A model generated the notes under the pieces. The model made no database searches. It was not told the DNA's origin and saw only the letters and a list, made by a program, of their open reading frames with translations. Positions 10,676 to 60,400 of a DNA stretch of 64,000 bases are shown in pieces. Within the stretch, counting starts at the first letter, position 1; every line of letters starts with the position of its first letter. The position numbers and the translations under genes are program-made. This DNA is from Octopus bimaculoides (lineage: Eukaryota): positions 110,425,669 to 110,489,668 of the forward strand of contig NC_068982.1 in assembly GCF_001194135.2 (NCBI RefSeq), in the 5' to 3' direction.

Positions 10676-11226
10676 TACTCTTTTACTTGTTTCAGTCATT
10701 TGACTGTGGCCATGCTGGAGCACCGCCTTTAGTCGAGTAAATCGATCCCAAGACTTATTCTTTGTAAGCCTAGTACTTATTCTATCGGTCTCTTTTGCCG
10801 AACCGCTAAGTTACGGGGACGTAAAAACACCACCATCGGTTGTCAAGCGATGTTGGGGGTACAACCACAGACACACAAACATATACACACACATACATAT
10901 ATCATCATCATCGTTTAACCTCTGCTTTCCATGCTAGCATGGGTTGGACGATTTGACTGAGGACTGGTGAAACCGGATGGCAACACCAGGCTCCAATCTA
11001 AATTTGGCAGAGTTTCTACAGCTGGATGCCCTTCCTAACGCCATATATATATATATATACACATATATGACAGGCTTCTTCCAGTTTCTGTCTACCAAAT
11101 CCACTCACAAGGCTTTGGTCGGCTCGAGGCTATAGTAGAAGACACTTGCCCAAGGTGCCATGCAGTGGGACTGAACCCACAACCATGTGGTTGGTAAGCA
11201 AGCTACTTACCACACAGCCACTCCTG
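10676..11226 (-). mobile_element. tRNA-derived SINE family A (central (TA)/(TG) microsatellite, CORE-like gcaccttgggcaag block), interrupted by an RTE tail
   Basis: Near-identical to copies at 28263, 30660, 40746, 43190 and 50284; head TGGCTGTGTGG (A box) and GGTTCAGTCCC (B box). Confidence 0.9.
10902..11043 (-). mobile_element. RTE 3' tail inserted into the central microsatellite of a SINE
   Basis: (CAT)n-cgtttaacc...gatgcccttcctaacgcc flanked on both sides by SINE (CA/TA)n. Confidence 0.88.
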
Positions 11227-11548: not shown

Positions 11549-11789
11549 TACTCTTCTACTCTTTTACTTGTTTCAGTCTTTTGACTGTGGCCATGCTGGA
11601 GCACTGCCTTTTAGTCGAGCAAATCGACCCCAGGACTTATTCTTTGGAAGCCTAGTACTTATTTTANNNNNNNNNNTTGGCCCGAGGCTATAGTAGAAGA
11701 CACTTGCCCAAGGTGCCACGCAGTGGGACTGAACCCGGAACCATGTGGTTGGTAAGCAAGCTACTTACCACACAGCCACTCCTGTGCCT
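11549..11789 (-). mobile_element. SINE family A copy with its centre replaced by a 10-N gap
   Basis: Both ends of the family consensus are present on either side of the Ns. Confidence 0.85.
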
Positions 11790-16344: not shown

Positions 16345-18480
16345 TCTGCAAAGAAAGAGGCTGGAAAATGCCATTATGAAAGACTGCTGAACGTGGAGAA
16401 TGAATGGGAGGAGGAGAGTCTGCCGAAGGTTGACCCGATTGAGGGACCAGCTACCTGAATCTACAGTACCTTGGTAATAAAGCAATTAAGGATATGAAGA
16501 CAGGGAAAGCCCCCAGTCCATCAGGAATCACTGCTGAAATGCTTAAAATATCTAGCAGTGTGAGTTATGGTCTAGCAACCCATATTGTAAATCAGGAGGT
16601 CCACGAAGGAGTCATACCCAATGACTGGTACAGCAGCATCATAGTCAACTGCTACAAAAGTAAAGGTGAGACCTTAGATAGAAATAGTTACAGAGGTATC
16701 AAATTGTTGGATCAGATGTTGAAAGTTATGGAGATTAATCATAGCCCAACTAATTAAGGAGAGAGTTAGCCTAGATGTGATGCAGTTTGGTTTTGTGCCA
16801 GGGAGAAACACTATTGATGCTATATGTCAGGTAAGACAGCTGCCAGAGAAATACCTAGTCAAAGATAAACTTCTGTACTTGGCCTTTGTTGACTTGAAGA
16901 AAGCCTTTGACAGGGTCCCCCAATCCCTTATTTGGTGGTCAATGCAGAAACTAGGGATAAACAAGTGGTTGGTTAGAGCTGTACAAGCCATGTACAGGGA
17001 TACTACCAGTAAGGTGAGGGTTGGCAATGAGTACAGAAAAGAATTCAGGGTATAAGTAGGGGTTCATGAAGGATTGGTGCTCAGCCCCCTCTTTTTCATC
17101 ATAGTCCTCCAGGCAATAACAGAGGAATTTAAGACAGGCTGCCCCTGGATGCTCCTCTATGCTGATGACCTTCCTCTTATAGCTGAATGACTACCAGGAC
17201 TAGAGAAGAAGTTCCAGGTATGGAAGAAAAGTCTAGAATCGAAGGGCCTTAGAGTTAATCTAACAAAAACCAAAGTCTTAGTAAGTAGGAAGGCAGAAAA
17301 ATCACAAATCCCTTCAGGTAAATGGCCCTGCTTGATCTGTAGAAAAGGCATAGGTAGAAACTCTGTAAGATGCACCCAGTGCATGCACCTTTTATTTGGA
17401 CACATAAAAGGTCCAGCAATATCAGAGGAAGATTGACAGGGAAACTAGCTTTTGTATGTGGAAGGTGCACAGGAACAATAAACACTGAAAACGTACAGAA
17501 AATAGACTCCTTCAACTACCAGGGGGGGTGCAAGCTAGAGGTAGTAGATAGCTTCTGTTATCTAGGTGACCAGGTTAGTAGTGGAGGTGGATGCTCCAAG
17601 AGCATAGCAGTGAGAATAAGATTAGGTTGGGCAAAGTTCAGAGAGCTCATACCTCTACCAGCCAGAAAGGACCTCTCTCTCAGAGTGAAAGGCAGACTGC
17701 ATAATGCCTGTGTGCAAACCGCCATGCTACATGGCAGTGAAACATGGGCTATAACAGCCGAGGACATGCATAGGCTTGAAAGAAATGAAGCCAGTATGCT
17801 TCGCTGGATGTGCAATGTCTGTGTACATGTTCGACAGAGTGTAAGCATCTTGAGAGAAAAGATAGGCATAAGAGGAATCAAATGTGGTGTGCAAGAGAGA
17901 TGACTATCCTGGTATGGTCATGTGATGCGTATGGATGAGGACAGCTGTGTAAAGAAGTGCTGCTCTCTAACTGTGGAGAAAACCTGTGGTAGAGGTACAC
18001 CCAAGAAGATATGGGACTCAGTAGTGAAGGATGATCTTCAAACTTTGAGCCTCACAGAGACAATGACTAGTGACCAAGACCTTTTGAGATATGCTGTGCT
18101 TGAGAAGACCCATCAAGCCAAGTGAAATCGTAGTTATGGCTGATGTTGGTGTCGTGTAACTGGTACACATGCTGATGACATGTAAAGAGTGCCATTGGAA
18201 CACTGGGCCTCGTGGAGGCTAGTGGCCGAGTTCTTTTTGAGCATTGGATCACGTGGAGGCAAAGTGGCTGAGTTCCTTTCAAGTGTTGGGCCTCACAGAG
18301 GCAAAGTGGCAAAGTTTCTTTCGAGCGTTGGGCCTCACAGAAGCAAAGTGGCTGAGTTCCTTTCAAGCGTTGGGCCTCGTGGAGGCAAAGTGGCCAAGTT
18401 TCTTTTGAGTTTTGGGCCTCACAGAGACAATGACCGAGACTTTTGGCATTATGTCATGCTTGAGAAAACCCTACAAAAGT
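16345..18480 (+). mobile_element. 5'-truncated, decayed RTE-clade LINE (RT plus 3' region)
   Basis: Fragmented ORFs KAPSPSGITAEMLK, YRGIKLL, QFGFVPGRNTIDAI, LAFVDLKKAFDRVP, LLYADDL, FCYLGD, LHGSETW; several stops and frameshifts; ends about 580 bp upstream of the POLR3C ATG. Confidence 0.93.
18200..18425 (+). repeat. 42-bp minisatellite (about 5 units) at the RTE 3' end
   Basis: Unit about tgttgggcctcacagaggcaaagtggctgagttcctttcaag; 14-aa periodicity in ORF 18189..18482. Confidence 0.88.
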
Positions 18481-28200: not shown

Positions 28201-31200
28201 ACATTTTATCCCTAATGATATGATATAAAACATCAGCCTTTCAGCTTGTGTAAGCCAGCATACTCTTTTACTCTTTTACTTGTTTCAGTCATTTGACTGC
28301 GGCCATGCTGGAGCACCGCCTTTAGTCAAGAAAATCGACCCCAGGACTTATTCTTTGGAAGCCCAGTACTTATTCTATCAGTCTCTTTTGCTGAACCGCT
28401 AAGTTACGGGGACGTAAACACACCAGCATCGGTTGTCAAGCGATGGTGGGGGGGACAAACACAGACACACAAACACACATACATACATATATATATATAT
28501 ACATATATACGATGGGCTTCTTTCAGTTTCCGTCTACCAAATCCACTCACAAGGCTTTGGTCGGCCCGAGGCTATAGTAGAAGACACTTGCCCAAGGTGC
28601 CATGCAGTGGGACTGAACCCGGGACCATGTGGTTGGTAAGCAAGCTACTTACCACATTTTAAGCAATTACAACTTTCACAAAGAAATGTGTGTTGAGAAA
28701 CACTGTCTTTATTCATTGTGCCCTTCTTCTTTTCCAGTTAATACCCAAAGAAGGAGATCAGATAGTCCTCCATCTGCTAAAGCAATGAAGATCTCTGTAA
28801 GTTACAGCCATTCAATTTTACACCTTTTTCATACACTGAAATTTTCTAGTTCTTCATGTACTAAGTTATGTAGTGGCTGTGTTACTAGTTGTAATAGTAG
28901 TGGTGATGATACTGGTGGTAGTGGTAGCAGTGGTAGTAGTGGTAATGGTGGTGGTAACGGTAGTAGTGGTAGTAGTGGTGGTAGTAGTTATTGTGATTGT
29001 GGTGATGCTACTGGTAGTGGTAACAGGCAGTAGTAGTAGTTGTAAAGCTGGTGGTAGTCAAGGTAATAACAGCACTAGTGGTAGTGGTGGTGGTGATAAT
29101 AGTAGCAGTTGTAGTGGTGTTAGTGGTTGTTGTAACAGTAGTGGTGGTAGTAGTAGTTGTGATGGTGGTGATGCCACTGGTAATGGTAACAGGCAGTAAC
29201 AGTTGGTATGGTAGTAATAGTAACAGTAGCAGTGGTAACATTTGAAGTAGTGGTGATGCTGGTAGTGGTGGTAAGAGTGACAAATGTAGTAGTTATAGTA
29301 ATGGTGGTGTTGATGTTGGGTAGAAATTAAAGAAAATGTTTCTGCTTCTATTACACAGGAGAACAACACTGATACAGTTTACTGGCAAGTTGACTTTGAC
29401 CGTTTCCATCAGCACTTCCGTGACCAAGCCATCATTTCTGCTATGCTGAACAAAATTGATAAGGTTGGTTTCTTTGACCTTATGTGTGTGTCTGTGTGTG
29501 TGTTTGTATCGACATCGTGTAATGGTTGTAAATGCACATCGCCATCATGCAAGTGATGTTGTTTGTTTCCAATCTTCCTTGAAAATATGTTCAGCCTTGG
29601 GGAAATGATACCTTGTCTGGAAACAGATGAGGGATGGATGATGACAGGAAGGACATCTGGTCGTAGAAAATCTATCTCAACAAATTTCATCTGAATCATA
29701 CAAACATGGAAAAGTGGGCATTAAACGCTGATGATGATGATGACCATTCAAGCGTGGCTGATGCCAGTGCCATCTGACTGGCACCTGTGCTGGTGGTATG
29801 TAAAAAGCACCATTTGAACATAGCCGATGCCATTGCCACCCAACTGGCACCTGTGCTGGAGGCATGTAAAAAGCACCATCCGAGTGTGGCCAATGCCAGT
29901 GCTGTCTGACTGGCCCCTATGCTGGTGGCATGTAAAGAGCACCATTCAAGTGTGGCTGATGCCAGTGCTGCCTGGCTGGCTCCCATGCCGGTAGCACGTA
30001 AAAAACACCCACTACACTCTCAGAGTGGTTGGCATTAGGAAGGGCATCCAGCTGTAGAAACCTTGCCAAACCAGATTGGAGCCTAGTGCAGCCTCCTGAC
30101 TTGCCAGTTCTCAGTCAAATTGTGCAACCCATGTCCAAATGGAAAGTGGACGTTAAACAATGATGATGATGATATATACATGCCAGAACAGACAATGGAG
30201 ACTGGTGTGGCCCCTGGCCTTAACAGTTCCGGTCAGACCGTCCAACACATGCCAGCATAGAAAACGGATGTTAAATGATAATGATGTATATAAAAAGAGA
30301 AAGAGAAAGAGGACTCTTTCACTTTTGCCAAGGACATGACAACCTCTCTAATGTGGTGCAAGTAGGTGCAAGCATGGCCATTTAATTAACAAGAATTATG
30401 GTTGAAAAATAGGCTGATGCTGGTGTTACATAACTGGTACCCATGCTGCTGGTATCTAAAAAGCACCTTTCAAGCATTGGGCTTCATGGAGGCAAAGTGG
30501 CTGATGTCGGTGGCATGTAAAAAGCTCCTTTTGAGTGTTGGGCCTCACGGAAGCAATGACTGAGACCTTTGGCATTATGTTGTGCTTGAGAAGAAGGTGC
30601 CATAGGGTTGAACTTGAAACCACATGGTTGTGTAGCAAAATTTTTAACCACGCAATCATACTCTTTTACTCTTTTTTTACTCTTTTATTTGTTTCAGTCA
30701 TTTGACTGCGGCCATGCTGGAGCACCGCCTTTAGTTGAACAAATCGACCCCAGGACTTATTCTTTGGAAGCCTAGTACTTATTCTATCGATGTCTTTTGC
30801 CGAACCGCTAAGTTACGGGGATGTTAACACACCAGCATCGGTTGTCAAGCGATGTTGGGGGGACAAACACAGACACACAAACACACACATACACATATAT
30901 ATATATATACATATATACGACGGGCTTCTTTCAGTTTCCGTCTACCAAATCCACTCACAAGGCTTTGGTCGGCCCGAGGCTATAGTAGAAGACACTTGCC
31001 CAAGGTGCCACGCAGTGGGACTGAACCTGGAACCATGTGGTTGGTAAGCAAGCTACTTACCACACAGCCACTTCTGCGCCTATATGGATGTTGATATTCT
31101 ATGCTTCTAATCACTTGAATGAAATAATGATGATGTTTATATTCTTTGTTGACATTATGACTAATTGTAGATATTACAAAAAATAAGGTTTTGGTTCTAG

Positions 31201-34200
31201 TGATGATGTAAATATGCTCCTAAAATTTCTTAATTCTGACTTGAAATTCATGTTTTATTTTTCTAGAAAGCTTCTGAAATAATCCGCACCATGCTTCGGG
31301 TTAGTGAGACTAACACTGCTGCTGATTCCCTTGTTACCACACCAATCTCCATTAATGAGGTAAGATCTAAATATTCTGCATTTGCTGTGTCTAATGAAAC
31401 TATATGCAAGATGTAAATGAACAAAGCTCCACAGTGGAGAGTTGTTGTTATTGCTTGCCAAGTTAATCTTGATTAAGTAGATCTAAATCAAAAATGTTCC
31501 AGCCATGGTCATCTTGTTTATTTATTATCCAAGACTACATTATCCAATGTGTCCTTCCTCCTTTATGATATGATCTGAGGGAATTGCGGCTGCTATTTCA
31601 AGCAGGTTGACATACGAAAGCTCACCCATTAGCAGTTGTTTTTGTTGTTTAGCCTCAAGTCTGCTCTGATTGAGTAAATTAAAGGCTTTCCAACTGTGAA
31701 CCTTTCACCTTATTAGTTTTACTCAGAATAATGAGGCCTACATTTTCCACTGTGTCCTTTTTTCTTTAAGATGACAGTAATTTGAGGGAGATCTAGCTAC
31801 TATTTCTAGCAGGTTGTACCTCCATGTATAGCCTCACTCATTGGCTCATAGATGGTTGTATTGCTGATGTTGTTGCTCTTCTTATTGTTCAACCCTTAAA
31901 GTCAATGTACCTTCCCTTCTTTAACCCTTCTGTTACTATATGTATCTTGAAATACACTGCATTTGTTATAATTAATTTTGAAAATGATGTATTTAGTAAA
32001 ATAATTTAGTCATTATTTACCTGGTGTTTAGAATATAAATAAACAGGAAATTATGAAGGACGGTTTCAATTTAGATCACTTTAAATGGGATGTTTGTATT
32101 CTAGAACCAGGGTGGTCTGAGGTAGGTTGGTATGAAGAGGATTGAGATAATAGAATTTACATGAGATGTAGCTACCATTTCTGGTAATGAGCATAAAGAA
32201 GCTTCATTTGCTTGACAGTAATGAGAACTTCGGTATTCTAGACAATCAACGATTACTTAGGACCAATGTATTTTTTGGTGCCATAGAGAAAGGTAAGTTA
32301 CCTTGATGCCATTTTGCTGATATTGGTCTATTTTGTTCAACTACAAAGCAAGTTCATTTTTTTTTTTATTGGAGAGGAATATAAGCTATTAAATTATCCC
32401 CAGTATATTACTGATATTTATTTTGATAGACCTTGAAATGTGTGCTAAAAACAATGGCAAACTAACTCTTGAAAAGTTAGTTCCACAAACCATCTTCACT
32501 ACTTTGGTGTTCAGTAATGTTTAGACTATGAGACCCTCCGAAGATGCTGAACCTTTGCATGAATTGTAGATGTCGCCTGTATGAGTTTCTAGGATCCTAT
32601 GTTCATTGCTACGTTGGTGGAAATGAGAGAGAGAGAGAGAACCACACACACACACACACACAGATAAATAGATAAACATACTACACACACATACATTTAT
32701 ATATGTATAAAAAAGAATAAGTTTTTCTTTGAACACCCAAGTGTAAGTTTAAAGAAAAGAAGTGGAAAATGTACTTTAAGAAACTTTATTTAAAATTGCT
32801 TAACCTATTTCACAATTTTCATGATTTTAAAAAGTAGTGAAATATAGACAGTCCTGGGGTTATACTGTATTTGTCTTAGTGAGTATTTGTCATATTTGAT
32901 TGACAGTGCTAGCTGTCAAAATAAACTGGGTGTCTGAGTTTCTCTGTTAATCTTCCACTGCACCTCTTGTGTGTACATAGTTTGCACTAAGTATACCATA
33001 TGGAATTTTCACTGACACCTTTTTACTTATTGAACAGGGTCGTTTTCCAAAGAGATTAGCATACTGTCTGTTTTTTACTAGAACTTTGGTCTTTTTGCTA
33101 ATTTAACTTTAAGACTTTTTGATTCCAGGTTTTGTTACCAGACCTGGTTGGTATATATATCATCATCATGATCATTTAACATCCGCTTTCCATGCTGGCA
33201 TGGGTTGGACGGTTTGACTGAGGACTGGCAAGCCAGGAGGCTGCACCAGGCTCCAATCTAATCTGGCAAGGTTTCTACAGTTGGATGCCCTTCCTAATGC
33301 CTGAGAGTGTAGTGGGTGCTGTTTATGTGCCACCGGCACGGGAGCCAGGCAGGTGGCACTGGCATCAACCACACTCGAATGATGCTTTTTACATGGCACT
33401 GGCATCGGCCATGCTCAAATTGTGCATTTTATGTGCCGCTGGCATCAGTGCCAGTCAGGCAGCACTGGCATTGGCCACAACAATAATGTCACTTGACTCA
33501 ACAGGTCTTCTTAAGTGCAGGATAGTGCCTGGCAATTGAAGGGTATATCCTAAATGGGCCAGTTATGCGACACTTGCATTGGCCACGGCTACGATCTCAC
33601 TTGGCTTGCCGGGTCTTCTCAAGCACAGCATATCTCCAAAGGTCTCAGTTGCTTGTCATTGCCTCTGTGAGGCCCAATGTTTGAAGGTCATGCTTCACCA
33701 TCTCATCTCAAGTCTTCCTGGGTTTACCTCTTCCACAGGTTTCCTCCACTGTTAGGGTGTGACACTTCTTCACACAGCTGTCCTCATCTACACGCAACAC
33801 ATGACCATACCAGTGCATGTTTTTGAATAAATTCTTGCATAAAAAATCATTATTTTAACATGGTGCACAAACTTTTTCTTCAGCCTAGTATTAATATCCT
33901 TATCTTTCTTTATTAGATATTCATCAATCTTCCTAAGGAACTTGAAATTACAAAACCCATCCTTGAGCAGTACCTCTCTGTCATGTGTGATGATGTACGT
34001 AAACAACTTTTCTCTCGTTTCTTCCATTTCTTTTCTGATATTCTTGTATTGACGTTTTGTCCAAAATAAAAAAAAAAGAAACAAACGTAAAACTATCAAA
34101 CAACTCTAAATATTAGCAACCATATCTATGTAGGTAGGTATGTATTGTATGTTATATGAATGTACTCAAGTTATTTAGCCCCAGGTCAACCCTAATTAGG

Positions 34201-36449: not shown

Positions 36450-39400
36450 TCACTAGAAAGTGAAAAGAGGAAGTTTTCTTGGAGTGTCCTGTTTATATAG
36501 CCATGAAGCAGGGCAGTGAGTGCAAAGGATTTAGCTTGTTTACCTCAATTCTAGATGGAGCAGAAGAGGTCAGAAAAGGGTCAAGTGGTGGAGACCGCTT
36601 CGGCCTAGCTATTCAAATATGGGTAAAGTGGATCAAATCCACTTCACGCCTGCCAGGTTCCTATATATATATATATACATATTGTATAAATGTATATGTT
36701 TGTTGTTCATATATAGACTTCTTGTATATACATCTGTTATACATATATATGTGTACTTACTTGTATTGTACTCATGTACACCTGCTGTACAAACAAATGT
36801 ACAAGTATCTATTACATTATACACCACCTAGGCCTGTACTTTCACACATGTCCAGGTGGATAATTTTCTCCCAGGATTTACTCCATAGCAAAAGGTTTTG
36901 TTACATTTGAATACCCTTGAATGTGTTGAATATAACTTTACACAAATATATTTTATTCAATGCTGCTTTGGGCAACATTATTTAATTCTAGCTTAACCAA
37001 GCTTTATGCTCATCAGAAAATATTTCATATGCTGTTTTAAGAAATATTTTGTTCTTATTGTGCTGTGTGTGACAGATTTGGTTTTCATAGCTGATGAAGT
37101 TGAATGATGCAGAAACACATCAAAAAAATCTGTTTCCACACGTCCAGGCGGAGAATTTTCTCCCAAGATTATCTCTACAGTAAAAGGTCTTGTATCTGAA
37201 TACACTCATCATCATCAGCATATGGGTTGAACGGTTTGGTTGATAACTGGTAAGCTGGGGAACTGCACCAGGTTCTGATCTGATCTGGCAAGGTTTTTAC
37301 GGGTGGATGCCTTTCCTAACACCAACCCCTCCAAGAGTGTAGTGGGTGTTTTTTACGTTCCACCAGCGCAAGTGCCATTGACATGACACGGGCATCAGCC
37401 ACGACCATGATCTCACTTGGCTTGACAGGTCTACACAAGCACAGTATATTGCCAAAGGTCTCAGTCGTCTGTCACTGCCTCCACAAAGCCCAATGCTTGA
37501 ACAGTGTTTTTTATGTGCCACTGACACGGGTGCCAGTCAGATGGCACTGGCATTGGCCATGACTATGATTTCACTTGGCTCAACCGGTCTTCTCAAGAAC
37601 AGCATATTGCCCAATATTTGAAGGGTGTTTTTTATGTGCTTTTTACTCAAGTATGTTAGATATGACTTTGCATGAATATATTACACATATTTGCTTTACA
37701 TACATCTGTTAGGTTTACACATATCTACTGTACTTATATTTGCTGACATATATATCTATTGTAAATACATGTTTATGTTATATTCATATTAAATCTATTT
37801 TATTAACTGAGATATAATCAAGAATTATGAAATATATATAACTTTGGTAGGATATCCTTATCATTTTTATTAGTTTGAAAATGAACTTTACTCTGTAATT
37901 CCTTCGTTAAACCTCACTGTGTATGATACCACTTACTTCCACTTCCTCTCCATTTCTTAACATTCTCACTGATGTCATATTATGAATCCACTTTAAGGTT
38001 TGGCTCTAAAAGTCTTCGGATATTCAGGATACTCTTACTGAAACAACATCTAGAACAAAAACAGGTAAATATTTATTTTTCATCTCATTTTCTTCTTTTT
38101 TAAACCGTTTTGTTATCTATTTTTCCATAGTTGTCATGAATGAGATGGATTTTAATAAACCTGGATAGTTGTTATATATATTGCTGCAATTATTTATTTC
38201 ACAGTTGATGTATGTAAATCTTACCACTAAACAATCAGTGGTATGTAAGGATGGGATTTGTTGCCAGACAGGTAGACATAACCCAGCATAGCTATTGAAC
38301 TTGATGAAAAAAACAACATAATAATTGCAGGCATGGCCATAAGGTCTGGGTTCAATTCTACTGTACAACTTGGGAAATTATCTTCTATCAAATCATCAGA
38401 TTGGCCTAAGACCTGTGAATGAAATTGATTACACAAAAACTGTGTGGAAGCCAGTTGGATGGATTGTACTTGTTTTTAGGTTGTGGACTGGATCTGCCCT
38501 AATCTGTTGTTTAACACTGGCCTTTGTGTACTTTTAGTGGAATCCACTCTGTTGCAAGCATTCAGACCAAGTCTCCCTTCCTTTCTGTCAACAATCTTGG
38601 AAGCTTTGTAAAAAGATCCTTTCCTTCTCTGATGAAAGGCCTAATACAAAAAAGTGTAAAGTTTGAATCTATGGCCTTGTTATCCAGCACCTCAACTTTA
38701 TAGCTATTTGTATCTCATTTAAATCTTGTTAATTGAGTGGGTTGTATCAAGTGCTATACTATGATGAATTATATTTGTAAGGACTTTAATTATCTTCACA
38801 TTTAACCCTTCTGAAATCAGTAATTTCAGTGATTTTAATATACCAAAGTTGATTTAAGGGATTATGTTCCTTTTTCTCACAGATTTGTTAAAAGAATTAT
38901 GAACTGCATGAGCTGAATAAATTAAGACACACTCTCTCAAGTACTTTCCACTACAGTAAAACCCAACTCTTCACTCAAATATAGTATGACCCAAAGAGGA
39001 TATAGTACTGATCCTTACTCCTGCACAAATATCCAAATTTGGTAGAATTGTGAAAATAGAAATTTATATAATTTCATTTTCATGTTTCAGATTGAAGAAT
39101 ATGCCATGATTCCTGCCAAAGAAGTCAAAGAAATTATGTATAATATGTTTGCTGATGGTTTTCTATTTGTCACGGTATGTTATTTACTTTTCTAAATATT
39201 TTTTATTGTTTCTATGTTGGTTTATGTAAGAGTTAGTTGGTGTTTGTTCTCCCTCAGTTGTTGAAACTCTAGGTCAGTCCTATTAGAGCAGACTTATGAT
39301 CAAAGGCATTTTAACCTTGACCTCTCCATCTTTCATGGAGTGTTCATTTAGGTCTAGTGTATCTTGCACTAGATTATCTTATGTACCCTTTTCTTTTTGA

Positions 39401-42400
39401 AGATATCATGGGTGATTTGTCTGATTTTTAGTATGTCAAGTGGCTATATAGTCGCTCTGTTTCAGTTCTATTTAACTCAGATCTTAGTAACCTTTTGTAG
39501 TTCATCTCTCAAATTCGTGGTAAGGACCTTCTTATGTAATAATGATTTCAAATTTTGGCACAAGGCCAGCAATTTCTGTGAACGGGTTAAGTTGATTGAA
39601 CCTCAGTACTCAACTGGTACTCATTTTATGGACTCCAAAAGGATGAAAGGCAAAATCAACCTTGGCAGAATTTGAAATCAGAACGTAAAGATGGTTGAAA
39701 TGCTACTAAGCATTTTGCTTGGCATACTAACAATTCTGCCAGCTCTAACAATTTTGTAGATGAGCACTAGATTAGAAATTTTACCAAAGTGATGATGGTC
39801 TACATAATGCAATCTACCCTAGGGAAATGGAGCAAAAAATAGATTAGAACTGAGAAGACATTGTTAAACATTGATCTAAGAAATTGATACAAGGCCATGC
39901 ATCTTAGGGTACGAATAAATCAGTCCCTGTCTTATTTTAGTGGTACTTATTTTAATGAGGAATGAAAAGAAAATGTCAACCTCAGCAAAATTTGAACTTA
40001 GAATGTGAAGGGACGTAACTAAATAATGAAATAATCATTTACTTTAGTATTTCTATCACTTCCCTTATTCTGCCACTGATAATTATAAATCTCCAACATT
40101 TATGTATACAGCCTTACATTTTAGTGGTAGGGCACACTTGATTAAACTCACTGTATTATTTGAAATCTCTACTTGGTTGCTTGGCATGCTGGTGGACAGA
40201 GCCCAAGCAGCTTAACTGGACCATCAATACTGTGCCCTGCAGTCCTGGCTAATATGGACAGGCCTCTCTAGATACTGAGCTGCAAGCACTCTGACTTGTT
40301 TGGATTAATTTTGCTCCTGTCACCATTGCTTTATATTCCTTTAGCAAAGTGCTAACCTCTGTAATATCTGACACCATTACAATGATGTTTGCATATTCTG
40401 ACGTTGCTCTCTTGCGTCCCTGTTTTGACTGTGACTCCATGATTCCTGTTTTTGCAGTAGTTACTCAAGTGTAATTACATACTGACAACATGAGGAAGAA
40501 CACCCTTGTAGCACTAAGTGTGACTGGAAGTAGTTCCAATAGCTGGCTCCTTAAGTAAGATCACTTAGTACATACTGCTATATAAGCAATTTAGCTTCTA
40601 AAAATTGGACTGGAATTGGTTGCAATGAGAAGTTACCAAGTAGTGAATGATGGCCCTATCAAAAGCTTGCAATTAGTCACAAATTTTTCAGAGGCCCACC
40701 AAAGCCAGGCTTATCTTGGATATATCTACATGGGATTACTCATATACTCGTTTCAGTCATTTGACTGTGGCCATGCTGGAGCACCGCCTTTAGTCGAGAA
40801 AATCGACCCCAGGACTTATTCTTTGTAAGCCTAGTACTTATTCTATCGGTCTTTTTTGCCGAACCGCTAAGTTACAGGGACATAAACACACCAGCATCGG
40901 TTGTCAAGCGATGGTGGGGGGACAAACACACATACATATATAAGGAAACTCATGAACTTCGTGTCAATCAACTTGTGGTCAAAGCTGATGACTGGCAGAA
41001 ACTTTCTGCTGTGACCGTAGATAAAGTTGGAATCTACTTCCGTGATGCTCAACCCGATGAGAAAGTGATCCGCACGCAGGTATCTTTTGAACCCATTTNN
41101 NNNNNNNNNNNNNNNNNNNNNNNNNNNNNNNNNNNNNNNNNNNNNNNNNNNNNNNNNNNNNNNNNNNNNNNNNNNNNNNNNNNNNNNNNNNNNNNNNNNN
41201 NNNNNNNNNNNNNNNNNNNNNNNNNNNNNNNNNNNNNNNNNNNNNNNNNNNNNNNNNNNNNNNNNNNNNNNNNNNNNNNNNNNNNNNNNNNNNNNNNNNN
41301 NNNNNNNNNNNNNNNNNNNNNNNNNNNNNNNNNNNNNNNNNNNNNNNNNNNNNNNNNNNNNNNNNNNNNNNNNNNNNNNNNNNNNNNNNNNNNNNNNNNN
41401 NNNNNNNNNNNNNNNNNNNNNNNNNNNNNNNNNNNNNNNNNNNNNNNNNNNNNNNNNNNNNNNNNNNNNNNNNNNNNNNNNNNNNNNNNNNNNNNNNNNN
41501 NNNNNNNNNNNNNNNNNNNNNNNNNNNNNNNNNNNNNNNNNNNNNNNNNNNNNNNNNNNNNNNNNNNNNNNNNNNNNNNNNNNNNNNNNNNNNNNNNNNN
41601 NNNNNNNNNNNNNNNNNNNNNNNNNNNNNNNNNNNNNNNNNNNNNNNNNNNNNNNNNNNNNNNNNNNNNNNNNNNNNNNNNNNNNNNNNNNNNNNNNNNN
41701 NNNNNNNNNNNNNNNNNNNNNNNNNNNNNNNNNNNNNNNNNNNNNNNNNNNNNNNNNNNNNNNNNNNNNNNNNNNNNNNNNNNNNNNNNNNNNNNNNNNN
41801 NNNNNNNNNNNNNNNNNNNNNNNNNNNNNNNNNNNNNNNNNNNNNNNNNNNNNNNNNNNNNNNNNNNNNNNNNNNNNNNNNNNNNNNNNNNNNNNNNNNN
41901 NNNNNNNNNNNNNNNNNNNNNNNNNNNNGCGTTAGGAAGGGCATCCAGCTGTAGAAACTCTGCCAAATTAGATTGGAGCCTGGTGTTGCCACCCGGTTTC
42001 ACCAGTCCTCAGTCAAATCGTCCAACCCATGCTAGCATGGAAAGCGGACGTTAAACGATGATGATGATGATGATGACAACGGGCTTCTTTCAGTTTCCGT
42101 CTACCAAATCCACTCACAAGGCTTTGGTCGGCCCGAGGCTATAGTAGAAGACACTTGCCCAAGGTGCCACGCAGTGGGACTGAACCCGGAACCATGTGGT
42201 TGGTAAGCAAGCTACTTACCACACAGCCACTCCTGCGCCTATATTTTCTGATCAAACTGCTGGTGACAGGAACTAATTTCCTTGCTAGTACATAAACTCT
42301 GTAGTCAGCAAAGGTATGGGCTGAAAATGATCAATAATAGCCCCTTTATTTGCACCCTTTCTCAACAGTACTACTGTTTTCTAGCTCATAGACCTAAGAA

Positions 42401-45400
42401 TTTTCTTTTTCTATAGCTAGTCATACAGACATTCAGTGTGTCTATATAAAGCTTGTAGAGAAGACCAGCTATGCCAGGTAACTTTTTCTCCTTACATATC
42501 CACTTATCACTGACTGTATTTCATCAGTTGCTGTTATTAGCAATTTGTGACACTGTGTCCTCTGCCAAAATTCACAACAGACTGTCATGCTAGCAATGAA
42601 GTTCACACCATTTATGTCTTGTTTTTACTACTGCCATCCCCATATCGGCTCTGTTCAAGCAGACCTATGATAAAAAGTATTCCAGCCATGACTATTGTAT
42701 TTTTTGTTTTTACAAGTAGTGTATTTTGGATTATATTATCAAGTGTGCTCTCCATTATATTTGTGATTTCATCTAGTCTCAGAACAACTTTTGTATGTAA
42801 TTAACACATTGCTTAATCATATTAAAGTCTTATCATTTATTGCATTTTCTGTTTCTGTTATAGGAAGTTTCCAAAGCGCCTGATCATGCACCATCCCGAA
42901 CATTTTTCTTGTTTCGAGTTGAAATCCAACGAGTAGCAAGGATGTTACTGAAGCGCTGTTACCAGGTTGGACAAATGGAATTTTGACAAAATTTTTTTGC
43001 CCTTTTCTCTTTCTCCAAGCATTTCACTTTTGATTAGAGTTCATCTTCTTATTCAATAGGAGATCTTTTGATAGAACAAGACTGATTATTGCGGCTGATG
43101 TGACTCAGTTTAATGAAAACCTGTCACTCCAGTTAATCATCATCATTATATATTTTCTTAAGCTTGAGTTCATAAATCTTAGGTGTGACTAGGAGTGGCT
43201 GTGTGGTAAGTAGCTTGCTTATGAACCACATGGTTCCGGGTTCAGTCCCACTGCGTGGCACCTTGGGCAAGTGTCTTCTACTATAGCCTCGGGCCGACCA
43301 AAGCCTTGCAAGTGGATTTGGTAGACGGAAACTGAAAGAAGCCCGTTGTATATATGTATATGTATATATATGTGTGTTTGTGTGTCTATGTTTGTCCTCC
43401 CCAACATCGCTTGACAACCGATGCTGGTGTGTTTACGTCCCCGTAACTTAGGAGTTCGGCAAAAGAGACCGATAGAATAAGTACTAGGCTTACAAAGAAT
43501 AAGTCCTGGGGTCGATTTGCGCGACTAAAGGCAGTGCTCCAGCATGGCCGCAGTCAAATGACTGAAACAAGTAAAGAGTATACATTATCGATCATTATTT
43601 TGTATGTTTGTGAGTTTAACTTGGGCCAACACATGGTGTATATATATATTTAAAATCAGGTTGCACCTGAAGAGACCTGGAAAATCTATCAATTGAAATT
43701 TAGTATAACAAAAAACACACTATAAGTTTAATAGTTTGACTAAACTTTGCTATTGGAATAATAACTTATTTCTGCAATATAGGTAAGACAGACATTAAGC
43801 AAGGTGATGGTAATTAACTATTCCCCTGTTTATTTCTTACAGGCTATAGCCAATGCCATGCTAAGGAGGGAACATGAAGTGAAGGAACACAGGTAAGTCA
43901 ATATTATTTTGGTTTAAGCAGAGAGTAGCACAATGGCAGATGGGAGTCATTAGGATAGAAGAATGTGTAATTCAAACTGTTATAAAGGTGGAATATATGA
44001 TTGGTATTTGATTGAGGGTTGGAAAATGTAGATTCTTGGAAATATGAGTTTTTGAAGTAGCACTAAGTCATATCATTATTTTAGGATCAGCTGTCATTTC
44101 TAGTCAGATTTTACNNNNNNNNNNNNNNNNNNNNNNNNNNNNNNNNNNNNNNNNNNNNNNNNNNNNNNNNNNNNNNNNNNNNNNNNNNNNNNNNNNNNNN
44201 NNNNNNNNNNNNNNNNNNNNNNNNNNNNNNNNNNNNNNNNNNNNNNNNNNNNNNNNNNNNNNNNNNNNNNNNNNNNNNNNNNNNNNNNNNNNNNNNNNNN
44301 NNNNNNNNNNNNNNNNNNNNNNNNNNNNNNNNNNNNNNNNNNNNNNNNNNNNNNNNNNNNNNNNNNNNNNNNNNNNNNNNNNNNNNNNNNNNNNNNNNNN
44401 NNNNNNNNNNNNNNNNNNNNNNNNNNNNNNNNNNNNNNNNNNNNNNNNNNNNNNNNNNNNNNNNNNNNNNNNNNNNNNAAGAATGTGTAATTCAAACTGT
44501 TATAAAGGTGGAATATATGATTGGTATTTGATTGAGGGTTGGAAAATGTAGATTCTTGGAAATATGAGTTTTTGAAGTAGCACTAAGTCATATCATTATT
44601 TTAGGATCAGCTGTCATTTCTAGTCAGATTTTACCCAAAGTTTTATAGACATATTGTGTTATGATATTATTCTGTAAATCTTTTTCTAGGACAAAGGCAT
44701 TTGTAAACCATTGAGCAATATATCAACTGCACAATGGTTGATGAATTGATTGAGCGAGGCATTTGTAATTTAACCTGTGTCAGTTCTTATCAAGCAGAAC
44801 ACTGATCGTACAATGCAGAAATCTTTAAATCTTTATTGTTTTGAATCAAATTATCTTTTTCTTGAAGAGTGGGCCCAGACACTCTGTAAGCTAAATTATT
44901 AAGCAAACTGAAATTATCTTTTCACAAATTATACTAGATTTATTGTATTTTAGGCGACTTCTTGATAAACAGCAAAGAGTTGAAGCAATTATTGCATCCC
45001 TTGACCAAAATGGTGTTGATGAATCTCAGAAAGAGGAAGTAGAACAAACTATCACTCCAGCTGAACGAAACCAACTTGCCAAAGTAAAACAGGATATAAA
45101 CAAGTAAGTTATGGCATCATAGTAATACTTTGAAGTGAACTGAATAGGTGAGGTATCAGAGTCTTTGTTAAAGAATTGACAATGTTTTGGTTCACAGTAC
45201 CATATGTAAGGTACTGAATAGTTTTACTTGAAATAGGTAGAGAAGAAGCAATTCAGTGACACAAATGTTTAATTGACCAGTTGGCTGCTGTTGTTGTTTA
45301 GACTCAGCTCAGTCATGTTCGAGCAGACCCATAATTTAAGTGTTCCACCCATGACTACCTTTGTCATTTCATAACCAGGAACTACATTGCCTAGCTCATG

Positions 45401-51438: not shown

Positions 51439-54400
51439 CTGCAAAAAAAAAAAAAAAAAAGTATTAAAACATTTAAAAAAGCTAAAAACAGAAAACATCA
51501 ATGTCTTAATAAACATCCTGAGTAACCATGATCATTCAAAGATATCTAATGAGTAATTAAACACTAGTCCTCCAGACTACTCAATTTTCTCAGAATAAAA
51601 ATGCAATGTTTCTTCTATTGCACAGGCAAAAGAAGGAATTATAAAGCAAATAATCAAATGTACTTCCTTTTCACTATGTACAATGTTTCATTCAAGTTGG
51701 AGTCTGAACTGTAAAGGTATAAGAGAGAACTAAAGACCCACTTGATTTCTAATCATGTCTTATGTATTGTAAGACTAAGTAAAGTTAAAATAGCATTTCT
51801 AGGGCTAAAGCAAGAGTGCAGTAGAGTAATGGAGATTCTTTAAGAATCAAGGATTATGATAAATTCTGAACTCTTAAATGATGCATGGATATTATGCAAA
51901 TTAATCATCATATTGAAAAAAAAAAAATTCAGATTAATTAGATAATAAAAATCTATAAAAGTTGTTGAAACAATTAAATAAATAGGTTTCAGGAGATAAT
52001 TCTTTAATGATAGCATAAACTAACTTAATAGTGACCCGCATAGCAGGTTTAAGATTGGGAATTAGTGGCAGTGCTACATACCAAATACTGTTGTCATCAG
52101 ATTCATTAGAAACTTCATCTTCAGAATAATTTCCATCAGTGTCATTTTCAGGTTCACCAGAATCAGAATAATCGTGAGATTCTTCATCACTGCCAGTCCG
52201 CAGAACAACTGTACGTTGATTCTTCTAATAAGATTCAAGACAAAAATATAAATTAAATTTAGAGAATAGTAATTTAGAGGTCTAATATTTTTTTTATATA
52301 TGTTATGGTCTCATTTTGTTCTAGGCATGTAACGGCAATACATTGAAATCAGTGCATGCAGTAAAAAAGAATTCCTCAAACATCTGATGCTTATATGCCA
52401 GTTATACCTAGCCAAAGATAAACCTCTGTACCTGGCTTTCGTTGACATGGAGAAAGCCTTTGACAGGGTCCCCCGATCCCTTATCTGGTGGTCAATGAGG
52501 AAACTAGGGATAGATGAATGGTTAGTGAGAGCTGTGTGAGCCATGTACAGGGATGCTGTCAGTAAGGTGAGGGTTGGCAACAAGTACAGTGAAGAATTCC
52601 GGGTAGAGGTAGGGGTCCACCAAGGTTCAGTCCTCAGCCCCCTCCTATTTATCATAGTCCTCCAGGCAATAACAGAGGAATTCAAGACAGGATGCCCCTG
52701 GGAGCTCCTCTATGCTGATGACCTTGCTCTAATTGCTGAGTCACTATCAGAACTAGAGGAGAAGTTTCAGGTGTGGAAGCAAGGATTAGAATCAAAGGGC
52801 CTTAGAGTTAACCTAGCTAAAACCAAAGTCCTAATAAGTAGGAAGGTAGACAAACCACAGACCCCTTCAAGTAGATGGCCCTGCTCGATTTGTAGAAAAG
52901 GCCTAGGTAGAAACTCTATAAGATGTACTCAGTGTAAGATATGGACACATAAGAGGTGCAGCAATATCAAAGGAAGGCTAACTAGGAAGATAGTTTTTGT
53001 ATGTGGCAGATGCTCAGGAGCAATAAACACTGAAAATGTGCAGAGAACAACTTCTGCCATATTCCAGGGAGAAAAACTAGAAGTAGTTGATAGCTTCTGT
53101 TACCTAGGTGACCAAGTTAGTAGCAGGGGTGGGGGCTCTGAATGTGTAGCTGCTAGAATAAGAATAGCCCGGGCAAAGTCCAGAGAGCTCTTACCTCTGC
53201 TGGTGACAAAGGGCCTCTCGCTCAGAGTAAAAGGCAGACTGTATGATGCATGTGTATGAACAGCCATGATACATGGCAGTGAAATATGGGCTGTGACTGC
53301 TGAAGACATGCGTAAGCTTGCAAGGAATGAAGCCAGTATGCTCCGATGGATGCGTAATGTCAGTGTGCATAGTTGACAGAGTGTAAGTACCTTGAGAGAA
53401 AAGTTGGACCTAAGAAGCATCAGTTGTGGTGTGCAAGAGAGACAATTGCGCTGGTATGGTGATTTGGTGAGAATGGATGAGGATAGCTGTGTGAAAAAGT
53501 GCCACAGCCTAGCGAAAGAGGTAGACCCAGGAAGACCGGGGATGAGGTGGCGAAGCACGACCTTTGAACATTAGGCTTCACCGAGGCAATGACTAGTGAC
53601 CGAGACCTTTGGAAATATGCTGTGCGTGAGAAGACCCAGCATGATAAGTGAGACCATAACCCGTGGCCTTTACCAGGGGTGTAGCCAGCCCACTTATGCG
53701 TACCTTTCCTTCTTTGGACACAAAACCCTGCTTGCGAAGACCTGTTGAGGCAAGTGAGATCGAAATCGAGCCAAATTCGACTGGCACCCATGCCAGAGAC
53801 CAAACAGAGGAATGTAATGTAGATGTAAATATCAAACCTATTTCCATCTCTAAAGATAAAGTTAATTATTTGAAAAATTATAATAATTTTTACATTAAAT
53901 TTTTCCATGATTGCATTGGGGTATGGTTTATTTTGATCAATTAATTTTATAGTTAGATGCCCTTCATTCTACCAATCTTAACTGGGAATCAGAGTGAGAC
54001 TGTTTCTTGTTTAGTTAGCAAATTTAGAGCAAACAGAGTTACCTATCTTACTCAAGTGTACAATATAGACAATAATAAGATCTGGAAGCTCATGGTCAAC
54101 ATTCCAATATCTTAAACTGATAACCATCTTGTATAACAAAAAATCTGAGTAATTCTTAATTGCAGATACGGATCATGCTAGTCCATTAATTAGGTAAATA
54201 TATAGGGGATAATTAAATTTAAAAACTAAATTAAATAGATTAAAAAAAAAAAAAAAAAAAGAAACAAAATGGTTAAATCACAAGTTACCATTTTCTTCTG
54301 ACGCAGCATTTCTTTTCTTTTTAATCGGATTTCCTAAAAGACACAAAGTAAAATGTAAATTATAACAGGTATTAAAAGATATATATTTATGAAGAAAGTG

Positions 54401-57400: not shown

Positions 57401-60400
57401 GATACTTCATGGTGCAGAGAAATTGAAGATCTTCAATAACTAGAGAAAAGGAGCTTAGTTTTGTCTATTGGGTATAAAGTATAACCATAAGGTACTGAGT
57501 ACAAGTAAATCAGGAAAGTATTTGAATATGAGGGTGTTTGTTGATATATGTAGAAGAGATATCTGCATTAGTATGGACATATGATACAAGTAAGAGGTGT
57601 TGTGTGGTGGCAGGAGAGGACAATGGAGGAGATGATGCAAGAGTGAGATGTTGAAAAATGCTGTAGTATATATCTGTGTAATGTATATTGCCAAAGAAAA
57701 ATGGATATTGACTACAATGGTATGCATTTGTATATTTAAGCATACAGGTATGTATGTGTCTACAAACATGAATATATGTTTATTGCAGATTTTGAAAATA
57801 TTTTAACAGTCAATCTATCTCTGGACTGAAATTTATTCAGAGGTAAAACATAACAAAGGCTTCAACTTTATACTAACCTCTCCATCATCATCAAATTTAA
57901 TCTTTGTGTTTAACTCAATGTTTTTCCTTAAAGCACGTTTTGCAATAGAAACTTTACTCAAAACTTTCTTTTTGTTTTTGGTAACTGTTTTACTGTTGTC
58001 AACCTGAAAAAGAAGAGATAAAATATTTTACATGATTCATTCTAATATCTGATCTGTAAAACTGGAGAAATGTTATGAATCAAACTGGCATCAATAAAGT
58101 GAATATGAGAGAGGTGAATTGACTTCAGTAATCAATAACAATTAAGAACGGGTCGTAGGTGAATATAATAACGATTGTAGTTAGAGTATTCATATCCAGT
58201 AATACCAGAATAGTCATTAACCTCAGACCAATCCTAATTGAAAAGATCTATGATCAGAGGCGTTCCTACTTTGACTGTTACATCTTATTTCAGGTATTGT
58301 GTACTCCAGACTACATTATCTGATGAATATTTTATTAAGATTGTATGGTGTGCATGTACGGAGTCTGTTATTTCTGTTTAGAATACTGTTATTTAGGTGT
58401 TATTTCTAGTAGATCAATGACCACATAGAATCTCCCTTGTTGGCATGTGAAGCTCCCAAGCTGTAAATGGTACACAGATATGAACACCAATCTAAGTAGA
58501 CATTGCAGAAAAGAGGAGAAGAGATGAGGTAAGATCTTGGTTAATTCAATACAAAAGCTAAGAATTAAAAATTATAGATTACTGGAAGTAGTAGTTAAAT
58601 TAATATATAGCAATCAAAGAACTTATGATAAAGTAATGCCAACATTTTACATTTGGATGTAATTTCAATGGTTTTAATGGCTAAGTCAGTGTCTATGATA
58701 TTTACAGGCTATCTTTGGTTTGTGAGATTGATATCGCTGGAGTTAGCAAGTGGTTCATGCATGACCTTGAGATAAGACAATGAATGCAATGGATATAGGC
58801 TGTGTAGAACTTAGTTGGCTTAGAGGAGAAGCTGCTGTAAAAAGCAGAATGAGGAGACAGTATGTCTATAGGCCAGAAGTTGTTAGTGTTGCTAGTAAGT
58901 CTGCAAATCAATCAGACTGCTATCTTTCGGATGGGCAGCTTGTATGTCTGGCAGAGCAGTACCATTGAGATGTAGCACTACTCCAGTGTAGGATTTAATT
59001 GAACATTAATAGAGAATTAGTGACAGATCAGAGCTGAATTATTTTCTGGCCCTGAAAAGAAGGTTAGTCTTTGGAATGCAATTTTAGCTGTATTATATAT
59101 AAAAAAAAAATTATAGTAAGGCCTACATGTAATATGACATAGAGAGTTTAAACTGTATTGTCCCAACATAGAGAGGAAGAAGTATAAGACTGTCTCCAGA
59201 AAAAAAAAGTTAATATTTTATGATTAAAAAAACATTAAGAGTAAAGTAGCAAAAGACGACAGGCAACAAGCAATATACAAAATGTTTGAAGTGTAATTAT
59301 ATTTAAGATAGATTGAAGGAGAGAGAGAAAATATTGTGATAAAATTAAAATATATGAATTGAATGAAAACATGCTTTATGTTGATGATTTATAGATATGA
59401 CCTTACAAGTTGATAGTTTAGAAATACAGGCATAACCTTCATAACAGCTCATGGCAAAAAGCCTTTTATCATCGAAATTAAAAGAATGGATAAATAAATA
59501 ACTCTACCTCCTTGGTTACATTTTCAACTGGCTCAGCAGGAATTCTTCTTTTAAAGGTCAGAAGGTCATCCTCATCATCATCACAACCAAACTGTACAGA
59601 AAATTTCTCCTTATCACAGTTAGAATTGCCTTCAACACTAGACCCAGATGCTTCATTCTCAGAATCACTACTTGAACCACTTCTGGTTGATATGTGATGT
59701 TTTGGCTGAGGTTTGACCTGTTTTTTGTGCTTTTCTTGCTCACTTTCAGAGTCAGATTCATCTGATTCAGTAGACTGCATGTCATCACTCTCCTCACCGT
59801 TGGAAGCAGCTTTCTTGACAGAATTATCAGCTTCTTTTTTTAAGCGTTGTTTCTCTTCTTTTTCCAAAAACCGTACACGTGGAATTACTTCTAAGCCTAG
59901 AGAGCTACAAAATAAATTAATAGATGAGAGACTAAAGTAAGACACCTGACTGTAAAATACTTATCTAAACAGTGTCAGTATGAGAGATTACAAGGATGAA
60001 TGATGAGTCATTGACTTATAAATATTTATAATTCAGTCCCTCCCTCCAAAATTTTGGGCCTTGTGCCTAAAATAGAAAAGAATATTTTAGAAGGCGGCGA
60101 GCTGGCAGAAACGTTAGCATGCTGGGTGGTGAAATACTTAGTGGTATTTTGTCTGCCTTTATGTTCTGAGTTCAAATTCCGCTGGGGTCGACTTTGTCTT
60201 TCATCCTTTTAGGGTCGATAAATTAAGTACCAGTTGCATACTGGGATGGAGGGGGGTTATCTAATTGACTGATCCCATCCCCCAAAATTTCAGGCCTTGT
60301 GCCTAGAGTAGAAAAGAATATTAATAATCCAGTGTTCATTATATAAATTTCTTAATAATTACAACTAATTAAGAAAACTAAATTATGCATATTTTATAGA

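Follow-up and report, generated by a model that had tools for sequence, protein, structure and literature searches.

A VPS13D exon and a LINE tail inside a split SINE of a POLR3C intron in Octopus bimaculoides: candidate LINE-coupled capture or assembly chimera

The POLR3C intron and its split SINE

We analysed a stretch of 64,000 nucleotides of the Octopus bimaculoides genome (the window; NCBI RefSeq assembly GCF_001194135.2, contig NC_068982.1, positions 110,425,669 to 110,489,668 of the forward strand), in which a short interspersed element (SINE) within an intron of POLR3C is interrupted at its central (CA/TA)n microsatellite. Between the two halves of the SINE lie a stop-free piece of 157 bp with homology to VPS13D, a run of 830 N, and the 3' tail of a long interspersed element (LINE). 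Coordinates are counted from the first letter of the window. This order of parts had been described in an earlier reading of the letters by a model that made no database searches (the sequence-only reading), and each part was recovered where it had been placed.

The host gene is represented by an upstream exon (39091..39174, plus strand, IEEYAMIPAKEVKEIMYNMFADGFLFVT), which ends in phase 0, and a downstream exon (42864..42965, plus strand, EVSKAPDHAPSRTFFLFRVEIQRVARMLLKRCYQ). When joined, the two exons match the Pfam family POLR3C_WHD (9.5e-17) and align without gaps to residues 380-441 of human RPC3 (E=2.2e-19). Judged from these alignments, the host locus is a phase-0 intron of POLR3C, as had been read from the letters.

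By BLASTN, the 3' half of the SINE (40746..40921, minus strand) shares 91-93% identity with four of the other copies in the window and 81% with one more. It is followed by a remnant of the central (CA)n(TA)n microsatellite (40922..40942, ACAAACACACATACATATATA), recognised by comparison with intact copies; the query used for the left half was 40746-40941, the last part of which is this remnant. The 5' half (42077..42240, minus strand) is 95-99% identical to other copies by the same method. The minus-strand orientation rests on a tRNA-like head recognised by eye in the 5' half, and a B-box-like GGTTCCGGGTTCAGTCCC on the minus strand was likewise seen by eye only, while ARAGORN and Rfam detected neither a tRNA-like head nor an RNA family in the region. 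Six further copies bring the total in the window to seven. These are 91-98% alike, and the four intact ones hold 32-50 nt of (CA/TA)n between their halves. Two other views of the element were tried and rejected. A composite of two SINE copies of differing age is not indicated, as the left halves are about 92% and the right halves 93-99% alike among all copies; and the similarity of the SINE 3' end to the LINE tail, which a shared tail would imply, did not exceed that of shuffled controls.

The piece between the SINE halves starts at 40942, and BLASTN of each part against the window found this piece (40942-41098) to be the only one that occurs once. Its junction with the SINE is free of N and lies within a 22-kb contig that also holds a POLR3C exon. 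The junction is preceded by just 7 nt of TA, at the end of the microsatellite remnant.

A single unspliced exon of VPS13D

The translation of the 157-bp piece, KETHELRVNQLVVKADDWQKLSAVTVDKVGIYFRDAQPDEKVIRTQVSFEPI, is identical to the peptide quoted in the sequence-only reading, where it had been likened to human VPS13D. An exhaustive search with HMMER, covering 1.84 billion representative proteins, returned 68 matches at E<1e-3. Among these are full-length proteins of 4212 and 4100 residues (P0017 and P0024) with VPS13_N, VPS13_M and VPS13_VAB domains and a UBA domain, in which the match lies past the UBA domain and at the N-terminal edge of VAB. Named matches include an NCBI entry "VPS13D-like" of Crassostrea virginica, an entry "VPS13D" of Bulinus truncatus, and JGI proteins called VPS13D. 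The mammalian-type fragment P0133 (HTHDLRIHQLQVRVNGWEQVSPVSVDKVGTFFRYAAPD...QVYF) reproduces the human sequence given in that reading. Conversely, tblastn of nine VPS13D proteins against the window gave a sole match, at 40939-41085 (E=1e-10), and no neighbouring exon. On this homology, the assignment of the piece to VPS13D, an intermembrane lipid transfer protein, is secure. Other searches were less informative: a word-indexed protein search with the 52-residue peptide gave no candidates, a method that evidently misses short eukaryotic open reading frames (ORFs) and did not return the best HMMER match either; a Pfam scan of the peptide gave a chance match only; a PDB search gave a chance match to a de novo TIM barrel and nothing else; and a 500-residue oyster VPS13D segment used as query returned six proteins, none of them from octopus.

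Most of the HMMER matches are short ORFs called on genomic contigs, and the similarity ends at identical places. The best of them (P0001), with 80% identity over 45 HMMER-aligned residues and 84% over the exon peptide, sits on the cephalopod Logan contig SRR13358879_919785 (L001), where TTGTTTTTCTGTTTGAATTTTATAG precedes the exon and GTATCTTTTGAGCCC comes after it. In the window the borders read AG/GAAACT...ACGCAG/GTATCTTTTGAACCC, which are the same limits. They enclose a complete exon with an intact reading frame (40945..41079, plus strand, 135 nt, 45 codons, phase 0-0) at the start of the VAB domain, with an AG immediately 5' of it (40943..40944) and, 3' of it, a GT donor with the first 19 nt of the VPS13D intron (41080..41098), 15 of the first 16 of which equal the intron start of L001. 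On two further contigs (L002 and L003) the exon begins at the same codon, behind a pyrimidine tract and CAG. The exon boundaries are shared with other molluscs in this way. Where full-length VPS13D proteins continue beyond the exon with ..ARIVFDV..EGSARK, the window encodes VSFEPI, so that the 19 nt from the GT onwards represent intron and not the next exon. On the 5' side there is only SINE microsatellite, with no trace of the ...RHR/K codons of the previous exon. By its sequence, the piece is therefore of genomic type: one whole VPS13D exon with its 5' splice site and 19 nt of intron, in unspliced form.

These features bear directly on the origin that had been proposed from the letters, namely a 5'-truncated, spliced VPS13D mRNA fused to an RTE-type LINE tail by template switching, that is, a processed chimeric retrocopy. 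Such an event would place host sequence 5' of a LINE tail, both in one orientation and at a microsatellite target, and a processed pseudogene, too, would appear as part of a multi-exon gene standing alone at an ectopic site. However, the homology comprises exactly one exon, the intron has not been lost, both splice sites and the native intron start are kept, and the exons that adjoin it in VPS13D are missing. No poly(A) is seen up to the N gap, in which the 3' side is lost. The AG and GT borders, the native intron start and the absence of an adjoining exon indicate that the template was not a spliced mRNA but either genomic DNA or unspliced pre-mRNA. The processed retrocopy is contradicted by this evidence and is hardly credible any longer.

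In comparison with L001, the exon has a dS of 1.47 and a dN/dS of 0.09, and all residues that are invariant in the VPS13D family are kept. With these two features, the piece is either the true exon itself or a copy of recent date. Identity to L001 is unevenly distributed: the last 24 nt of the exon and the first 16 nt of the intron (41056-41095) are identical at 35 of 40 positions to L001 407-446, against 82 of 111 in the remaining exon, where synonymous sites are saturated (the dS given above). The conserved stretch may be a splicing or RNA-structure element, although the signal is weak.

That an AG/GAA and a CAG/GT bound a 135-nt segment of phase 0-0, compatible with the host intron but lacking a polypyrimidine tract, had been noted before, and both observations stood up. 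Pyrimidines make up 36% (T 16%) of the 25 nt that lead up to the AG, compared with 64-68% in L001 and L002. Judged from this composition, the AG is neither in its native VPS13D acceptor context nor a working acceptor, and the lack of a pyrimidine tract upstream implies that this is not the working VPS13D locus. It also bears on the idea that POLR3C uses the segment as a functional or recently exonised cassette exon, for which its stop-free sequence, its AG and GT borders and its phase would qualify it. Apart from the poor acceptor, the flanking POLR3C exons join without missing residues relative to human RPC3, so that POLR3C requires no exon between them, and an insert of 45 residues would split the C-terminal winged-helix domain. 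We consider a cassette exon very improbable.

The LINE tail, a second interrupted SINE and the assembly gaps

The tail of the LINE (41929..42056) lies on the plus strand, as does the exon, and is closed by a (GAT)6-7 microsatellite (42057..42076, plus strand). At least five further copies of 41929-42076 could be identified in the window by BLASTN, with 83-97% identity and likewise ending in (GAT)n, in agreement with what the sequence-only reading had said about strand and terminal repeat. Longer copies of the family continue upstream; in the copy at 34487-33159 the tail comes after a degenerate C-terminal sequence of reverse transcriptase (RT), and RVT_1 is matched by two related elements, one at 16.4-17.9 kb and one at 52.5-53.3 kb. 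As the family is multicopy, ends in (GAT)n and has RT sequence attached in its longer copies, the tail is, on sequence criteria, the 3' end of a LINE. LINE fragments with RT were observed at 52540-53256 and 16443-17900, both on the plus strand, and in the 52.5-kb copy RVT_1 is followed by a PHD-type zinc finger (E=1.7e-5). Other copies do not conserve the ORF that runs through this tail and stops 4 nt before the (GAT)n.

RTE elements typically carry a microsatellite at the 3' end, and the tail is consistent with such an origin; the RTE label of the earlier reading is a putative one. For the octopus element RTE-2_OV a microsatellite 3' end has been reported, as have RTE-type LINEs with such ends and recent activity in Octopus (PMC9115989). 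Neither the tail, nor RT words, nor the exon could be found in the supplements of that paper.

In front of the longer tail copies at 29700-30020 and 33360-33540 stand tandem units of about 40-45 bp (GGTGGCA(C/T)GTAAAAAGCACC...), and short-read contigs are likely to break in a variable array of such repeats.

A second SINE copy in the window (10685..11226, minus strand) provides the closest comparison. It belongs to the same SINE family and carries a tail of the same LINE family at the same central (CA/TA)n site. This tail copy (10901-11043, minus strand) starts at GCGTTAGGAAGG, exactly the point at which the contig to the right of the 830-N gap begins (41929). The second SINE differs in that it has the opposite orientation, is fully assembled, holds an insert of only about 141-143 bp, and contains no foreign exon. 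Thus, the presence of a tail in the split SINE can be explained without the exon. The shared end point at GCGTTAGGAAGG points to a discrete short tail element (about 145 bp) or to a preference for one 5' end point.

The exon and the tail of the split SINE are separated by the gap at 41099..41928, the length of which (830 N) is merely estimated; the contig ends on its two sides share no overlap. An open frame of 359 residues (40975-42054) crosses the 830 N into the tail, and is an artefact of the arbitrary N length. Two other gaps illustrate how such lengths are to be read. At 44115-44478 (364 N, within the region 43959-44634) the flanking 156 bp are 100% identical, because contig ends overlap there but were not merged or because of an exact tandem duplication; the region would be too long by at least 520 bp. 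At 11667-11676, in a SINE copy at 11566-11789, a gap of the minimum size (10 N) takes the place of at least 190 bp: the left half is cut short, the microsatellite is absent, and the right half lacks its first 53 nt. Nearby gaps are thus mis-sized by about 190-520 bp, and the lengths of N runs in this scaffold are unreliable. Six of the nine gaps in the window adjoin TA runs.

These properties of the assembly give weight to an explanation in which the junction is a chimera: a contig of about 160 bp from the true VPS13D exon, bounded by the TA-rich acceptor region on one side and by some repeat at intron position +19 on the other, would have been wrongly joined into the poorly assembled middle of the SINE. 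The real locus would then consist of a SINE half, microsatellite, LINE tail and SINE half, like the second SINE, and the assembled VPS13D locus would lack this exon. In line with this, the piece runs into N after just 157 bp, its left end coincides with the exon acceptor beside TA, and its reading frame is intact and constrained. A short unique piece with low-complexity and N borders inside a repeat, with other gap artefacts within 2 kb, is also what a misplaced contig or a mis-closed gap in a short-read de Bruijn assembly looks like. The chromosome-scale O. bimaculoides assembly re-uses the contigs of the earlier shotgun assembly (PMC9068888), and therefore gives no independent assembly of the window; moreover, short-read octopus assemblies have been reported to fail around LINEs (PMC9115989). 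On the other hand, the junction is free of N and shares only 7 nt of low-complexity TA, so that bridging k-mers or reads must exist unless gap closing erred. That the piece shares its orientation with the LINE tail would have to be due to chance (1 in 2), and the second break, at intron +19, needs an explanation of its own. We regard a chimera as a serious contender, with a probability that stays below one half.

Searches beyond the assembly yielded no record of the junction. Exact look-up of two junction-spanning ORFs, an ORF of the flank and one large exon ORF in the contig collection gave none on record, seven guessed ORF endings for the true VPS13D locus were absent from the same collection, and a metagenome scan found nothing. 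Elsewhere in the window, an open frame of 155 codons on the minus strand (59478-59945) with many Ser, Asp, Glu and Lys codons resembles a coding exon from an adjacent gene, and the contig collection has no record of it.

Origin of the junction and its significance

Our tentative preference is for a physically real junction, at which the exon and the LINE tail arrived in one event of target-primed reverse transcription; we slightly favour this LINE-coupled capture over an assembly chimera, while its own probability, too, falls somewhat short of even. We propose that reverse transcription would have been primed at the SINE microsatellite and would have started on the (GAU)n-ended LINE tail. It would then have extended onto unspliced VPS13D pre-mRNA, for which two routes can be envisaged: either a LINE copy would lie in the VPS13D intron on the 3' side of this exon and would have been read through, equivalent to a 5' transduction, or the enzyme switched from the LINE RNA to VPS13D pre-mRNA at the 5' end of the tail RNA. 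Reverse copying would have proceeded back through the start of the intron and then through the exon, and the insertion would have been sealed at the first TA-rich cDNA end able to pair with the (TA)n target, an end supplied by the ...TATAAG acceptor region of the intron. The outcome would be a dead single-exon gene fragment, compatible in phase with the POLR3C intron but without a usable acceptor. Such a mechanism accounts for the retained donor and intron start, for the common orientation, and for the position of the left end at the acceptor.

Several observations are consistent with LINE-coupled capture. The tail has the same orientation as the exon, lies 3' of it and within the same split SINE, and belongs to a family that is attached to RT-bearing LINE remnants and inserts into SINE microsatellites. 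The short TA stretch between SINE-specific sequence and exon makes a join by overlap of long TA runs unlikely. The junction is free of N inside a 22-kb contig with a POLR3C exon, and what precedes it is not the context of the working VPS13D locus. In addition, the assembler was conservative elsewhere, where it left a gap despite the 156-bp identical contig ends.

Other observations weigh against such a capture. A gap of unreliable length parts exon and tail, which may not be continuous. As the right contig starts exactly where the short tail copy of the second SINE begins, the LINE insert may be only about 148 bp long and lie beside unassembled microsatellite, with no room for an exon. The 5' end of the fragment is within about 8 nt of the exon acceptor, for which a real event needs an argument from microhomology. 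The exon is undecayed, and could equally well be true exon sequence. The assembly is a short-read draft, and artefacts can be seen in it 2 kb from the junction and at 11667. Finally, a target-site duplication is not readable at this locus, where the flanks of the insert are microsatellite.

A junction could also be real and have nothing to do with the LINE tail. Either the repair of a break or a template switch in replication would have copied a VPS13D piece as DNA into the fragile (TA)n, or the junction of SINE and exon would have arisen in a SINE copy elsewhere and been brought in by a crossover within the SINE. The genomic character of the fragment (exon plus intron start) and its location in a TA microsatellite fit with this, the second SINE explains the LINE tail independently, and SINE copies are both dense (seven per 64 kb) and 91-98% alike. 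Nevertheless, two independent insertions in one 40-nt microsatellite are less parsimonious than one, and both variants are hypothetical. We consider an independent origin of this kind unlikely.

LINE-coupled capture has parallels in other systems. In 5' and 3' transduction and exon shuffling by L1, reportedly described by Moran et al. in 1999 and in later work, host sequence likewise ends up beside the 3' end of a LINE, in the same orientation, in a new intron and with an unspliced flank. The present case differs in that the LINE is microsatellite-tailed and not L1, that the host piece is 5' of the LINE, and that a gap lies between the two. Chimeric retrogenes of U6 and L1, or of mRNA and L1, are said to arise by template switching of RT (Buzdin et al., in 2002-2003, are credited with them) and resemble the split SINE in having a copy of a foreign RNA at the 5' side and a LINE part at the 3' side, in one orientation and at one target. 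To our knowledge, the known template-switch chimeras copy mature small RNAs or spliced mRNAs, whereas the piece in the window retains an intron boundary.

A further step would be a working vehicle for exon shuffling, in the form of a multicopy, non-autonomous LINE-tailed element that carries the captured exon with its donor through the octopus genome, or of a phase-compatible 45-codon cassette that is included in some POLR3C transcripts. We hold this to be quite improbable.

The consequences depend on which explanation is correct. If the junction is an artefact, 45 conserved residues where the VAB domain starts are probably missing from the VPS13D model of this assembly and the POLR3C intron is wrongly represented, and the value of the finding is one of quality control. 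The expansion of SINEs and LINEs in cephalopods has been much discussed, while its consequences at the level of genes are, as far as we know, poorly documented. If the junction is real, a microsatellite-tailed LINE other than L1 would have moved an intact exon of an essential gene, together with its donor site, in phase into the intron of another gene, and such events would provide direct raw material for exon shuffling in cephalopods.

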